Assembly: GCA_965113315.1 (NCBI GenBank)
Contig: OZ220364.1
DNA: 64,000 bases
Origin: Podarcis vaucheri
Lineage: Eukaryota
Strand: one strand, 5' to 3'
The translations under genes and the position numbers were made by a program. Below are positions 6,850 through 54,800 of this stretch, piece by piece. Below the pieces are notes generated by a model that saw only the letters and a list, made by a program, of their open reading frames with translations, did no database searches and was not told where the DNA came from. Position 1 is the first letter of the stretch. Every line of letters starts with the position of its first letter.

Positions 6850-9800
6850 GTAAGCCACCTGTGACCTTTCCATTTTCTCACCCTATGTCAGTAGCAGTTG
6901 ATTTATCTTTACCTTAATGTAAATAAGATTCCCTTGCTTTGAGAAGTCCTGTACTTGACTAGAAGTCACACCTATGAAAACAAGCTCTAAATGTCTGTAT
7001 AAAGGTCAGGAACCCTTAATGAAGGTTTCACAACTTTTAGGCATTGCTTTAAGTTTGCAATGCATCTTAAAAAAAACTTGGTACATATTTTATGGATTCC
7101 AAAATGACCAATCATAGTTCAGCACGTTTTTAGCTTCATGAAGTATTGCACGGATTCTGAAATCTTTTCTACAGTTGTTTTTTTAACAAAATATTTTGGA
7201 TGTAAATGCAGCAGTAGAGCTGTTTTGTCATGTTTAGGAGCTGTTACCTTTGCTGCACCCAACTCTCAAGTGAATGAGAAGACTATTGGCTATGTTAACC
7301 TTCTTGTGGTCCAGGAGTAGCCAGTAGCCTTATAGATGTTGGCACCTGTTTCTGAGCTAAGAAAAGAAGGATGTTGGTGGACTAAACCTGCTGTCACCCC
7401 TGGCCCCTGGCATGGGCTGGTGAGAGTGTGGCAGAAGACCATTTTGGCTACTCCTGCTGTTGTCAATAGGATTCTTTAGCATCTTATTTGTTCCTCCTTC
7501 TGGCGAAACAACAATTTTCTGAAAATTCAGCACTGCAGAACAACTTGATAAATGTTGCATCCAGAATTTCAGGATAATCCTTAGTTATTGCATATTGTAA
7601 ATTAGAGAGCAGTTTGTCAGAATCATAGAATTTGACAAGACTGGCATCATGGATTACTGGAAAAGCCAATCAGTGGTTCAGCAGTCAGTGTTGCTCAGTG
7701 GATAGTTGGCAGTTCCAATCCGTTAGATCTCAAGTTGGCATTGAATCTCTTTCCTCACAAATGGGAGTGGAGGCCAAACAATACAAACAGGATTTATCTC
7801 ACATATCCCGATTTTGCAGTCTGAAAACCTTGGCTACCAGGCTATAATCTCCACTTCCTACTCTGTGCAATGCAAGTGCACTTCTGTGGGTAGACCTTGA
7901 CTGTTACTAGCTAAAATTAAAATGGATTTATGCTAAGTGTAAATGCTTCTGGATGTTCATAGTATTTTAAACGTTATAATTCTTGCTTCGCTAGGTCTCT
8001 GCCCAGACTGGGAAACCTGGGACCCAAAGAAGCCTGTTGATAATGCCCGTGAAGCCATGCAGCAAGCAGATGACTGGCTGGGTGTCCCTCAGGTATGGAG
8101 AAGAGAAATGACATTTGAGCTTCAGCATATCCAGGTGGCAGGATATGAACAGAAATAATTTTACTTGTAGCATCTGATGGTCCCTGTCCCACAAATTCAG
8201 CTGTGCTTAAAAATACCTGCTGTGGTATGAAATGTCACCGTCTCAAATGATTAAAAACAGTGGGTCCTCCACACAGAATGCGTTTGTTGAGACTGCTTCC
8301 TTGAAAGCTGCCTCTTGAGTGTACAGTAAGCCCGTAACTTATGCATGGGTTACATTCTGGGAATCGTGCCTAAATCCAAAGTTCTGTGTAGTCAGTAGAC
8401 ATTGGGTTCAATGGTAGGTGGAATTGGCAGTTGCTACCTGGATGCCCTCACACCCCTTTTATTTTTATTTGCCAAGCCTGTAAAGCTGAATGCACACAAA
8501 TTAAAAGTGCGTAAATCACAAACTTACAATATTGAAAAACTCGCGTTTCCCCTCTCATTTTTACAAGGATAGAAGCCCCCCTTCCCCCTTCCTTTGAAGG
8601 TTGGGCTGGATCCTATCCCTGCTAGAAACACTTCTATAGTTTCCTCTGCCTTTATTGAAATGACTCATGTTATGCCCATTATTTGCTCCAGTAAAAGAAA
8701 GCACTTACGACTTACTGTGCCAGTGCCAGTTCAATAAATCTGCCTAGCTGCCCTCAGTGTTTCTCTATGATTAAGACCCTTGTCTGCTGTTATGTACTTT
8801 TGAATTGGTCCTACTGAAGTATTTATTTGACAGGTCTAAAAAAGTTTGTACATAGAACCTAGGCAGTGTTTAGGGGGACCAGTCAAACACTCAGTGCAAC
8901 TTCAAGCGATTGGCTGTTGGGAGGAAGGTGGCATCATAACTTTTTGACTGGCAGTAGTAACTCAACTGCAAATGACCCAGCTACAAAGCTATGTGTGCAA
9001 ATAAAGTGCACTTATTCTATGTGTTGCAATTACATGGCGTAATCTTTCAAAAGGCTTCTTGCTCTTAGGAATGCTACTGGTTAACTATATTTCCAAACTT
9101 TGGGAATTATTGGACGGGCAGTGATTTGGATGTGTAGGAATGTATGAGGGGAACTCTGATTCACATGTTGTAATCCTAATGAAAATATGTCCTTATTTAC
9201 CAGGTCATCGCTCCCGAAGAAATCATACACCCTGATGTGGATGAACACTCTGTAATGACCTACTTGTCACAGTTTCCCAAAGCAAAGCTGAAACCTGGTG
9301 CTCCTTTGAAGCCTAAGCTTAATCCAAAAAAGGCAAGGGCGTATGGCAGAGGTGAGGTCTAAAATGCTTTTCTTATAACTTATGTGTATTGTTACTTATA
9401 TCTTGTTACATACATTCAAAACTATTGTGCTTTAAAAGACCAGTTGGTTCTTGCTCTATTTAAATCATGTTTGTAGACTTCCAAGTTGTATTGTATTCGT
9501 TTAGTGCAGTGCTGAGATTCAGAAAAATGTGGAAATAATCCAAAAGCCACTCCTACTTTCACATGAAAATTCCCACTTTGAGAACCAGTTTAGCAAGGCT
9601 ATTGTCTTGTTCTAAGCTGTAAACCTAAACTTCATCACTGTCAGTGGGAGGGGACCAGTTGCTTCGTGTAAGGCAGTGGTTCCCAAACATTTTTCCATCA
9701 TGGACCACCTGGAAAGTTGCAGAGGGTCCAGTCCACTTAATGGTATTTCTGCCTGTTGTAGCAATTGTAATGCACTATGCTGTATGGTTTTTAATTGTAT

Positions 9801-48800: not shown

Positions 48801-51800
48801 GTGTTTGCAGTCCATTGCATTTAGTATAAATGTACATAAAGAAAAGACTTGCCTTTAACACTCATACTCTACACAGACTGCAAACGGAGAACTGACAACT
48901 TGTTTTTAACCATGTGATGAAGTCATGTTGTGTTTAGCTGGCTTTTGCCCAGTAATTTAGTATGAACTGCAGAAACAAAAGGTTCCCTGCAATAACTTCT
49001 GAGCTGTCAAGTGTTGTCCAGTTACTGTCCACTAGAGTCCTGGTTTCGTGGAGCATAAATTTGCATTTGTAAGCAGCATGCATGTCTTCTGATTCTCATC
49101 GATGTTTTCTCTGTAAATTTAAGTGGAAAGGCATTTGGATGGTTTGCCCAGAATGTTAAGATCCAGTAATGTTAATATCTAGTGGTGTTTTAATCCAAAG
49201 TCCTAATGGGGAATTTTCCTTCTTAAAGATGACAATAGGAAGCAATCTCAAGTTAAACTGGGCTCTGCTGCTGACTTCCTGTTAGACATTAATGAGACTG
49301 ATCTTAGCCTCTTGACAGCCAGTATTAAAGCCCCATCTGGCCGAGATGAACCTTGTCTTCTGAAAAGGCTACCCAATAACCACATTGGTAAGTCTTAATC
49401 ACCTTCTAGGGAGGCTGGTGTATTGGTTGTGTGGTGCTGGCAGGGTGGTCTTGGGGAAGCTTGTGAGCCTGCGCCACAATTGGAAACGAATAATACTTTT
49501 AATTTGTGGGTAGAGTGGGATTTTGATGCCACAAATAATATTTAATGCCAGCTATCTTCCAGGGACGCGGGTGGCACTGTGGGTTAAACCACAGAGCCTA
49601 GGACTTGCCGATCAGAAGGTCGGTGGTTCGAATCCCCGTGATGGGGTGAGCTCCCGCTGCTCGGTTCCTTCTCCTGCCAACCTAGCAGTTCGAAAGCACG
49701 TCAAAGTGCAAGTAGATAAATAGGTACCGCTCCGGCGGGAAGGTAAACGGTGTTTCCATGCTCTGCTCTGGTTCGCCAGAAGCAGCTTAGTCATGCTGGC
49801 CACATGACCCGGAAGCTGTACGCCGGCTCCCTCGGCCAATAAAGCGAGATGAGCACCGCAACCCCAGAGTCGGCCACGACTGGACCTAATGGTCAGGGGT
49901 CCCTTTACCTTTACCTGTCTTCCAGTTCTGTATTGTGATTTGACAGTGTGTGTGGAGGGAGGGGGGCAAAAAGATAAAGTGGGAAGTTACAAATTTGTCT
50001 CGCTGCTAACCTCTGTCTGGCAGGTATCTCATTCATTCCACGGGAGGTGGGAGAGCACCTGGTCAGTATTATGAAGAATGGGAGCCATGTCCCCAACAGT
50101 CCGGTGTCCATTATGGTGGTCCAGTCTGAGATTGGTGATGCGAGCAGAGCAAGGGTTTCTGGACGTGGCTTAGTCGAAGGACGCACGTTTGAAATGTGTG
50201 ACTTCATTGTAGATACAAGAGATGCAGGTCAGTACTGGGATTCCTGGGCTGCCAGAGGGTATTGAAGGGATGCCTGTGGGCCGCGGGTTGCCCACCTGTG
50301 ATGTGGTTGATCTGTTGTTGTTCTGAGTCTCAGTTGTCCGACCATCACAGCAACTGAGCAGAGCAAAATTGTAAATTGTGGTTGCCATGATGTAGAACAG
50401 GTTTGTATGCTCTGTCAATTTGCTAATTTATATAGGTTAAAACTCACAGCTCTATACCACAAGCAGCATATCAAGCAAAATCCCATATGTGACCATGAGT
50501 TGAAACAGCTGGCTCACTTGTAATGGTTAATATACAATTGATATACTGCAAAAGACTGCAATCCATAAAGCCGTCCATCAAGATTTAGGCAGTGCTCATT
50601 GGAGCTCTTTACAACCGCTTGCACTCATCCCAGCTGCTTTCTTTTCTAGGTTATGGTGGGATATCGTTGGCAGTTGAAGGACCTAGCAAAGTAGATATCC
50701 AGACAGAAGATCTAGAGGATGGAACTTGCAGAGTTTCATACTTTCCAACTGTACCTGGTGTCTACATAGTATCTACTAAGTTTGCTGATGAGCACATCCC
50801 AGGTAAGAGAAAAGGAGCCTACGTAAGCGAGCCATTGCTGGTCCACTTCCCCATCAGCGCTGACCTCTTGTAATAAGTGCAGAGTCTATAGGACACTATC
50901 TAGGCTTCCCACCAGGGCTTTCATGTTCTGAAAATGCCTGAAGAAGCTTGACTGCTAAATTTTGGAAGGCAGGATAATAAACCTCTTGCGCACCTTGAAG
51001 GTGTTTTTGTTTGAGGGGTTGTCTCCTGCTGCAGTGTAACACTTATCTCTTCGTTACTCAAACTAGAATATTGGTTTGGTACAGGTGACTGTCAGCGTAC
51101 ATGGGGGTTGCATTCTAGGGTGTAGCTTGCAAAGCCAAAATCACATATAGTCAAAATACATTGGGGTCATAGGTGGGTGGGATTGCCAAAGCCTTTTTCT
51201 CCCTGGACACCTGCCCCGCCTTTAATTTGTTTAAAATTCGCAAAGCATGTAAAGCTGAATGTGTGTAAATAGCAAGTTAATCTGTGTAGGAAGATGGGGC
51301 TTCCTTGATGGTCATCACTGATAAGTCTCATGCTTAATGTGCTTAGTTAACAATGCAGTGGTCCAGCCTTCCTCCTGGGAAAGAATTCTAAGTGGAAATA
51401 ACTATTAGTAGATGATATGTTACTTTATTGCCTGTGAAAGTCTTTATGCTTCCTGTACTGATAGATGGAACTCAATGTTGTTTGTCTCTACTAACTACAG
51501 GGAGCCCATTTACTGTGAAAATCAGTGGTGAAGGAAGGGTGAAGGAAAGCATTACACGTACTCGGCGGGCTCCTTCTGTGGCCACGGTTGGAAGCTTGTG
51601 TGATCTTAACTTAAAAATTCCAGGTAAGTTAGTTCTACTAATACATTTACTGTTTTGGAAACCATAAACCAATAAGTCATTGAATCTTCTGGGCATTCTT
51701 TGCAATCAGATTTAAAAATGGAATGTTATCCAACTAATCTGTTTCTTCTGTTATCCTGATCTTCTAGAGATCAGGGAAGCATTCTTATTTAGATTGGGGC

Positions 51801-54800
51801 TTTGCATGGTAGGACTCACACCCATTTCTTCCTAGGCCCCATGAAGCGGCAGTGGCATTTAAATTTTGCTTTCCAGCACATCACCCACTGACTCAGTTCT
51901 CATAACAAGTGACCTGGTTCACATGTAATGCTAAGCCAAACCTGGACTTAAGGTGAATGCACAGGCTATTCAAAATGATATCATTATTTTTGCCTCTTAG
52001 ACCTTCTTCCTGCTGCTATTCTACCCGAGTCTAAGCCACAATTTGACTTAGCACATGGCTGAACCCAGATTTGTTTTATTAACCAAGGTTTTTTCCTGGT
52101 TTCACAGCTTATGGTTTGTCTAGAGGAAACAAACCATGAGCTTGAGTTTAGGCTACATGTTAAGCCAAACCATGGCTTAACTTACTGTAGCACAGCAGTA
52201 CTCGATGAAGAACAATACGCCCAAAATTTCTGTTCTGGGAATTCATGCTATGTGTGAAGTACGGGTGTTAGGATGATCTCAGAAGGTTGTACTTGAGTCA
52301 CTGTAATGCTTGAGTTACCTTCAGCCGTGTTTTTGGAAGGGTAGGAGCGCAGTTGCTGCTATAGAGATCTGTATCATGTGGATCTAACTGGGGGAGACAC
52401 ATAAAATAATTGGCTGGTTAAAGAATAACTGCTATCCTGCTCATAGAATGCACTAATATACAGAATATATTCAGCATGCCGCTTCAGTTTAATATGTATT
52501 CTGACGTCTGTTTCTGTCTCTTTCTCTGCTGCTCTAATCAATCTTGGTCTTCCTGTCTTCTGTTCCTTTCTTTCCCCCTATTGCCTTCTCATAGTTACAT
52601 GGTTCCAAATGGCTATATGTCTGGAGAGATTGTCCCGTGTTTCACACCAGTTCATTCCCACTTTCCTGTGTGTTGAGCAGAAGGAAAACTGCCAGACTCA
52701 ATTGAGGGAATCTTGGTGTCCTAGTTTCACAAAAAAATCAGCCAACATCAGACAACAATGTTTCCAATCAGTCCTTCTATGGGATCTACAGATGTATTAC
52801 ATACCTGGCTCCTTAGGGGTAGTGGGTACGTTGTAGTACTGAGGTTGTTCTATAACTGTATTACATACTTCAATAAAATTTGCTTTAAGGCGCAATGCAT
52901 GGCAAGTAAGCAGCAAAAGTATTTGTTACGAAGACCTGTAACAAACCCTCAGTCAGTAATGGAGTTTGTGCCCCTCCAGATATTGTTGAATTCCAATTCC
53001 TACCAGTTCTCAGAATGGGTGATGTTCACTGCACTAAACCCAACTCTGTTCCCAAATAAAATTAGTTTCTTTCTTGCTTCCTTTCTCCTTTCCTTTCCTT
53101 TCCTTTCCTTTCTGAGAACTTCAAAGAACTTCAAAGCACAACCCCTCCTGGACATATTTGTCTGTAACTTGGTAGATTTGATCTGCTCTGTTGTGGGGGG
53201 AGTCTATTATGCCTGCAAATTCTGTCCTCTTCTGTCAACAGGAAAAGGTCGGGGTTTTTTTTACTTCCCAGTAGTTATTGGCATGGGGGATGAAGTGGAC
53301 TTAAGTTGGGTGATTCAATTCTTGATTCATTTGTCAAGTGCTTCAGAAAGCGGCAGACTGCTTTCTGAATTGAGAGATTCTCTTGTTTGAGAGATTCTAT
53401 AGCTTCAAAAATGGATGGTGGGGACTCAAAGAGCAATGTATTGATTTCTCATTACCAGCTGCAAGCTCTCTTAACTCTGCTTTCTGCAGTCTGGAGACAC
53501 CATGACTTGCTTGTCAAGGGTGGTGGGTGACAAAATAATTGGATTTGTGAAGATTCTTGGTTTTTGAGCTGAACTGATAAGTATGTGCTCGTCCCTTATA
53601 TATATCTGACACTCTGCATGCACAGGTGAATGCTTGGTATGCACTCACTTAATTGTCAGTTATGATTTGCTGGTTGCAGTTCTGGGAAGTTGAGTTCCAT
53701 CAGGTTCCCAGCAAATGTCTGCAGGTAAAAATGTTTTGGTGTATGATCTGTAGATGAATGTGCACTCAAGGGCCACTTTGCATGTAATGTTTGAGGGCAT
53801 TTCAAACATCTGAAAGCAGCTGCCTTTGGAACTTCCAATAGACCCCAAGAACCTCAGTTGTATAGTCAACTAAACTTGGTGACTGGGTTTCCTATGGGGA
53901 AGGTTTCAAAACAACTGAAATACTGGGGAGCTCTGCCCTCGTACACTGGGCATTGTGTGACAGAGTAAGATGTTTAGAAACCGGATCTACCTGCTCCCCA
54001 TTAATGGTCAGCTCCTTTCCCTTTTTTTTAGAAATCGACATTGGTGACATGTCAGCTCGGGTTACTAGTCCATCTGGGAGAATGACAGATGCAGAAATAG
54101 TAGAGCATGATAAAAACACATACTGTGTCCGCTTTGTACCACAAGAAATGGGGGTCCATAATGTTGATGTGAAATACAGAGGACAGCATGTGCCAGGCAG
54201 TCCATTCCAGTTTACCGTTGGGCCGCTTGGTGAAGGAGGGGCCAATAAGGTTAGAGCTGGCGGTCCAGGACTTGAAAGAGCAGAGGCAGGCATCCCAGGT
54301 AAGACCTTCACTAAATTTCATCTGAATACATGGGCATGGGTCTAAGGGCCTTGCAGTGAGAGGGGACTATAGCTGTAATCTTGGAACAGGGTGCTTACAC
54401 CTTGTAACACTAGAGCACATTTCTGGAAGCCTAGTGACCCTGCCTTGTGTTGCAGAGCCCCATATCACAAAGGGATTGGAGGGTCACTTGCCTGCTTCTA
54501 ATTCCTGCATGGTTGTTGTTGTTAACAGCTGAGTTCAGCATCTGGACAAGGGAAGCTGGAGCTGGAGGTCTTTCCATTGCAGTAGAAGGACCAAGTAAGG
54601 CAGAAATTGCTTTTGAAGACCATAAAGATGGATCGTGTGGTGTATTATACACTGCTCAAGAGCCTGGTATGGATATCTTAAGCATTAGCAAGTTGAAATG
54701 AAGCAAAACACCACAAAAACAATTCCTCCTTGCTTAGCAAAGTTCTTATTTCTTCCAGGTAACTACGAGGTGTCCATCAAATTCAACGATGAGCATATTC

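Follow-up and report, generated by a model that had tools for sequence, protein, structure and literature searches.

Does the FLNB gene of a lizard hold, within one of its introns, a counterpart of the insert known from Ig20 of FLNC? The question is raised by a stretch of 64,000 nucleotides (nt) of Podarcis vaucheri contig OZ220364.1 (assembly GCA_965113315.1), hereafter the window, in which a preliminary description, made from the letters alone, had noticed a candidate cassette exon of 231 nt in the filamin intron that follows ...CDLNLKIP. Among the binding partners of the FLNC insert are myotilin, Xin and myopodin; such inserts are generally regarded as disordered. The FLNC insert is 82 residues long and has been called an FLNC-specific feature that FLNA and FLNB lack, and Z-disc targeting and several disease-relevant interactions are explained by it (PMC7216277, PMC7244511); its Akt/PKC-alpha sites lie in the stretch RERLGSFGS (PMC7244511).

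The anatomy of the candidate exon (Table 1) is plain in the window and is the one that had been described, including the phase-1 frame, the two splice sites and the in-frame rejoining. Its acceptor at 52594/52595 reads ...ccttctcatag/TTACATGG and its donor at 52825/52826 reads GTAGTGG/gtacgt. The G carried over from CCA G at 51623 opens the frame, the translation ends in ...GSLGVV with no stop, and the last G of the exon joins the AA at 54032 to give GAA (E), the same codon as in the form that skips it. On inclusion, the predicted junction peptides would be ...LKIPVTWFQM... and ...GSLGVVEIDIGD.... The open frame around the exon extends from 52447 to 52833 (129 codons) and contains seven in-phase GT sites, the last of which, GTACGT, is alone in having A at +3, G at +5 and T at +6. 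The acceptor is rich in pyrimidines (86% over positions -53 to -4, 78% over positions -103 to -4), as against 58% and 72% for the flanking constitutive exons, and this pyrimidine value was reached by only three of the 8,968 AG sites on both strands of the window.

We then compared the start of the candidate exon with that of the FLNC insert, which was taken from measured peptides (human Q14315 construct and mouse D3YW87) in the supplement of PMC7244511. Further FLNC insert peptides are given in the same supplement and one more in PMC5247616; the FLNC sequence quoted in the preliminary description agrees with the measured peptides, except for nine residues that have no peptide. The query was the 15-residue start of the FLNC insert only, and the comparison was ungapped and scored with BLOSUM62. 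The results showed that residues 1-15 of the exon are identical to the FLNC insert start at eight of 15 positions (WFQM-x4-ERL-x-R); the alignment has no gap, lies equally far from the shared splice junction in both and scores 40. Among the 59,183 stop-free windows of this length on both strands of the 64 kb, the candidate 15-mer ranked first, and the runner-up scored 28. A score of at least 40 was obtained in one of 10.4 million windows generated by a third-order Markov null, which corresponds to about 1e-7 per window, so that the likeness to FLNC proposed earlier is significant against null controls for these first 15 residues. The probability of such a match anywhere in the intron is about 2e-4, or about 0.015 when all 68 15-mers of the insert are allowed, and becomes far lower under the condition that the match lies at the exon start. 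The other two reading frames of the exon gave no convincing FLNC-like stretch.

The position of the insert is also shared. The FLNC peptide ...KIPGNWFQM... places the insert directly after LKIP (PMC7244511 supplement), and a Tinamus guttatus model annotated as "filamin-C-like, partial" (P0065) joins CDLNLKIP in frame to GEAAPQDMTAQ, without the insert. The mammalian peptides and the insert-less tinamou model together indicate that the insert of FLNC is a cassette that keeps the phase and lies between these two exons, at exactly the junction named in the preliminary description. These sequence comparisons lend good support to homology between the start of the lizard exon and that of the FLNC insert. 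As in FLNC, the lizard exon is a separate phase-1/phase-1 exon directly after CDLNLKIP; the FLNC insert has 82 residues and the lizard exon 77, and GS-x-G near the C-terminal end is common to both. The differences are that muscle FLNC regularly contains its insert whereas the FLNB exon of the lizard was skipped in every RNA read seen, and that the peptide from the lizard has many Cys and Trp residues and, unlike the FLNC insert, no dual-phosphorylation motif.

The insert-less tinamou model is an observation in its own right: either the exon was missed in the annotation or the FLNC insert is skipped in birds.

The reading that we propose is that the candidate is the counterpart of the FLNC insert exon and is used conditionally, in restricted tissues; we put its chances at about even. 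A cassette exon would have been present before FLNB and FLNC separated, would have become constitutive in FLNC and would have stayed optional in FLNB. Since the exon start significantly resembles the FLNC insert start, an origin before the split of FLNB and FLNC is the simplest reading; of the earlier proposal that the insert is older than the filamin duplications, the homology of the start was found, while the ancestry itself is what this homology most simply suggests. The lizard exon would still be splice-competent and would be used in restricted tissues only (striated muscle being the obvious guess), and its inclusion would, as FLNC does, place an insert (here of 77 residues) between strands A and B of Ig20. 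That the frame is intact and the acceptor outstanding speaks for an exon in use now or until very recently.

Regulated use of an exon in this intron has a precedent, since the human heart-specific exon 40B/C lies in the same FLNB intron. That exon spans 147 bp, contains an internal donor at 70 bp, was found in heart only (van der Flier et al. 2002, PMC2199218) and yields the truncated filamin-B variants var-2 and var-3 with 24 new residues (PMC2199218). The same study noted the 82-residue insertion of FLNC exactly beside the var-1 region and did not link it to exon 40B/C (PMC2199218). Like the lizard exon, exon 40B/C follows the 123-bp exon as an alternative exon; it truncates the protein, whereas the lizard exon keeps the frame, so that its predicted product is of full length. 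The var-1 and delta-H1 variants of FLNA, FLNB and FLNC are likewise regulated cassettes, in the rod-2/hinge region, that alter partner binding, although they remove known exons whereas the lizard candidate would add an undescribed one. A possible inclusion enhancer of the RBFOX type also lies 3' of the candidate donor (Table 1); the density of TGCATG in the window (0.77 per kb) is such that one is expected within 100 nt about 7% of the time.

Several results weigh against this reading, those from RNA among them. Three RNA data sets (X1, X23 and X24) from a related taxon, with tissues not on record, were searched, the raw reads being 12% of each run. A contig of X1 with a depth of 287 joins 51623 directly to 54032, and the same junction was present in X23 (four reads) and in X24 (16 reads). 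Depth across 52620-52904 was zero in all three sets, and no joint or loose end was found in them at 52595 or 52825; contigs of low depth (about 5) lie elsewhere in the intron. The muscle isoform that had been suggested thus found no inclusion junction in these sets, all of which skip the exon. At the level of the peptide, the composition is odd (five Cys, as reported before, and three Trp in 77 residues, with a hydrophobic tail), nothing was found in the ESM Atlas, and protein-likeness was low (recognition 1169). The Akt/PKC-alpha motif RxRxxS/TxxS/T (RERLGSFGS) is absent, with no Arg at -3 or -5 near the exon end. Of the approximately 20 identities in 77 residues that had been counted earlier, a check of the first 15 residues gave eight, and residues 16-77 show no convincing likeness to FLNC by eye. 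This divergence past residue 15 is by itself no proof of decay, because paralogues this old are expected to keep only short motifs.

A DNA contig of a relative spans 52189-53058 with 13 substitutions (about 1.5% divergence) and no gaps, and this freedom from indels speaks for the proposed reading. The only listed substitution within the exon is non-synonymous (52732 A>C, K>Q), three of the 13 being unlisted. One substitution in the 231 nt of the exon against 12 in the 639 nt of the flanks is not a significant difference (p=0.10), and this comparison has no power either way. The open frame itself also counts for little: when the intron was shuffled 2,000 times with its dinucleotides preserved, 797 of the shuffles (40%) contained a stop-free, in-phase AG..GT cassette 231 nt or more in length, and four cassettes longer than the candidate exist in the real intron. 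An open in-phase frame alone is no more than chance. What goes beyond chance is the match to the FLNC start, the pyrimidine tract and the openness from this particular AG. From the candidate AG, 80 codons pass before the frame closes, 77 codons being reached from 2.9% of AG sites in phase 1, and among the AG sites of the window only the candidate joins a top pyrimidine tract with at least 77 open codons.

The skipping of the exon in every observed RNA junction, the zero depth, the restriction of the FLNC likeness to 15 residues, the Cys, the Trp and the hydrophobic tail, the low protein-language recognition and the lack of any sign of reduced substitution relative to the flanks are all what would be seen if the exon were a dead homologous relic, no longer spliced in this lineage, whose frame and signals had not yet decayed. 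The truncating primate exon in the same intron adds that coding capacity can be absent here. We regard such a relic as a serious possibility, to be held with somewhat less than even confidence. It has to account for an openness of 77 codons found at just 2.9% of AG sites and for a pyrimidine tract in the top 0.03%, and, by a rough estimate, a stop or an indel would be expected in 231 neutral bases within tens of millions of years; because neutral decay would be this fast, silencing would have to be recent, after retention for hundreds of millions of years. A chance open frame, with no exon, no homology and a coincidental likeness to FLNC, would agree with the 40% of shuffled introns that hold cassettes of such length, with the lack of a significant database match and with the lack of RNA cover. 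We hold it to be very improbable, since the match to the FLNC start is the best in the window by 12 BLOSUM units and occurs in about 1 in 1e7 null windows, since it sits exactly at the first residues after the AG in the correct phase, since the same AG is independently among the three strongest pyrimidine tracts of 8,968, and since p is still about 0.015 over all 68 15-mers across the whole intron.

A different possibility, compatible with both the conditionally used exon and the relic, is that the candidate is the lizard orthologue of the mammalian cardiac exon 40B/C (var-2/var-3) with its frame intact. Both exons occupy the same intron after the 123-bp exon (2,408 nt in the lizard and about 2.5 kb in human), use of the human exon is confined to heart, and a fragment of chimpanzee FLNB isoform 13 (P0017) carries a 24-residue tail of the var-2 type. 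We nevertheless consider this orthology unlikely: tblastn of the 24-residue primate tail against the window found nothing in 52595-52825, its best matches (E of at least 0.09) falling in unrelated places, the tail scored about -3 against the FLNC 15-mer (BLOSUM62, summed by hand), which is near the null mean and not significant, and the lengths are 147 and 231 nt. Less probable than any of these is that FLNC sequence recently reached FLNB in squamates by transfer or gene conversion, for which there is nothing direct, although it would explain an FLNC-like motif without long retention; the flanking exons are clearly of the FLNB type, a likeness limited to 15 residues is unfit for a recent copy, and position and phase are exactly orthologous.

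A wider combination would join an ancestral cassette that predates the split, a full-length, FLNC-like FLNB isoform in non-mammalian heart or muscle, human exon 40B/C as its degenerate remnant and WFQM..ERL.R as its functional core; taken as a whole, this is rather unlikely. If an FLNB counterpart of the FLNC insert is accepted, the insert would date to before the paralogues split and the 15-residue core (WFQM..ERL.R) would have been kept across paralogues for about half a billion years, which would make this core a candidate for a role in binding or structure next to strand A of Ig20, the auto-inhibitory strand. Such a counterpart would also help to explain, in evolutionary terms, why human FLNB has a puzzling heart-specific exon in this intron. 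If the exon is unused, it would still be a clear case of a paralogue-specific exon surviving as a recognisable relic.

The host gene runs on the + strand from a CH2 exon near 8,000 to beyond 54,300 and is the sole gene in the window. Comparison of its exons with the PDB by phmmer showed higher scores for FLNB than for the other filamins: the Ig9-10 exon gave 195 and 176 bits with FLNB (2DI9 and 2DIA) and 115 bits with FLNA Ig10 (3RGH), the exon of the actin-binding domain gave 72.6 bits with FLNB and 63.4 with FLNA, and the start of Ig14 gave 92 bits with FLNB (2E9J) and 58 with FLNC (7OUU). The Ig20 exon by itself does not separate the paralogues (matches to FLNB 2DLG and FLNA 2J3S). Judged by these comparisons, the host gene is the FLNB orthologue, as the preliminary description had it. 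The local structure agrees, a 123-nt exon followed by a 2,408-nt intron in the lizard being that of human FLNB (123 bp and about 2.5 kb; PMC2199218). The 123-nt exon corresponds to the human FLNB 123-bp var-1 exon 40 (PMC2199218) and recurs in 32 vertebrate genomic open reading frames (ORFs). Both flanking borders are backed by RNA contigs and reads, in which 2,408 nt are removed at a GT..AG joint.

Table 1. Features of the FLNB intron that holds the candidate exon and of its borders (positions in the window; a slash marks a splice border).
Feature	Position	Strand	Basis
FLNB exon, 123 nt, 41 codons, ends ...CDLNLKIP, phase 1 (CCA G/gtaagt)	51501..51623	+	sequence; RNA joint 51623 to 54032
CU-rich pyrimidine tract and AG acceptor; possible branch point ctctaAt at about 52533-52539	52494..52594	+	composition
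Candidate cassette exon, 231 nt, 77 codons, phase 1 to 1, stop-free	52595..52825	+	sequence; FLNC-like residues 1-15
Predicted donor GTACGT (TGG/GTACGT)	52826..52831	+	sequence
TGCATG hexamer, possible RBFOX-type inclusion enhancer (muscle, heart, brain), a lead only	52896..52901	+	71 nt 3' of donor
Next constitutive FLNB exon, 267 nt, Ig20 strands B-G and Ig21 start, begins /AA ATC GAC	54032..54298	+	Pfam Filamin E=7.8e-17; PDB; RNA joint

Database searches with the exon peptide gave no match. The 76-residue peptide found nothing in the PDB at E up to 10 (phmmer) and nothing among 1.84 billion representatives at 50% identity at E up to 0.001 (phmmer); the silence of the representative library says little, because FLNA, FLNB and FLNC (about 70% identical) probably collapse into very few entries. 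A word-indexed search over proteins of 71-225 residues (0.55-1.75 times the query, a range that leaves full-length isoforms outside) found nothing, and Pfam had no match to the peptide. When the two flanking exons served as queries, nearly all matches were genomic ORFs reading through the exon borders, and the insert was present in none of them.

The candidate exon is single-copy, as its depth in the genome of the relative is normal (36.8) whereas neighbouring bins have repeat-level depth. The intron stretches 51860-51954, 52050-52239 and 52905-52999 showed a 3- to 9-fold excess of depth in the contigs of the relative, in which loose ends cluster at 51910-51942 and at 52161; the excess depth and the loose ends indicate interspersed (SINE-like) repeats that flank a single-copy exon. 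A three-copy family of 24 nt, ATGYTAAGCCAAACC..., was observed at 51928, 52028 and 52157. A transposon origin of the exon was considered and rejected, there being no repeat copies of it in the intron and its depth in the relative being that of a single copy.

Some further observations concern the surroundings of the exon. A resemblance WR..FHT.S, seen by eye between the tail encoded by primate exon 40B/C and a different frame of the lizard exon, was dropped because tblastn gave it no support. Another GCATG lies at 52474, 121 nt 5' of the candidate acceptor, and two AATAAA hexamers lie 3' of the candidate donor, at 52872-52877 (47 nt after the donor) and 53055-53060, with no RNA depth there. 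Within the 267-nt Ig20 exon, six fixed differences (54063-54253) separate the RNA from the window, a divergence of about 2%. The intron upstream of the 123-nt exon (50803-51500) has about 698 nt here and a reported 102 bp in human FLNB, and the exon before it ends in ...GCTGATGAGCACATCCCAG at 50802.

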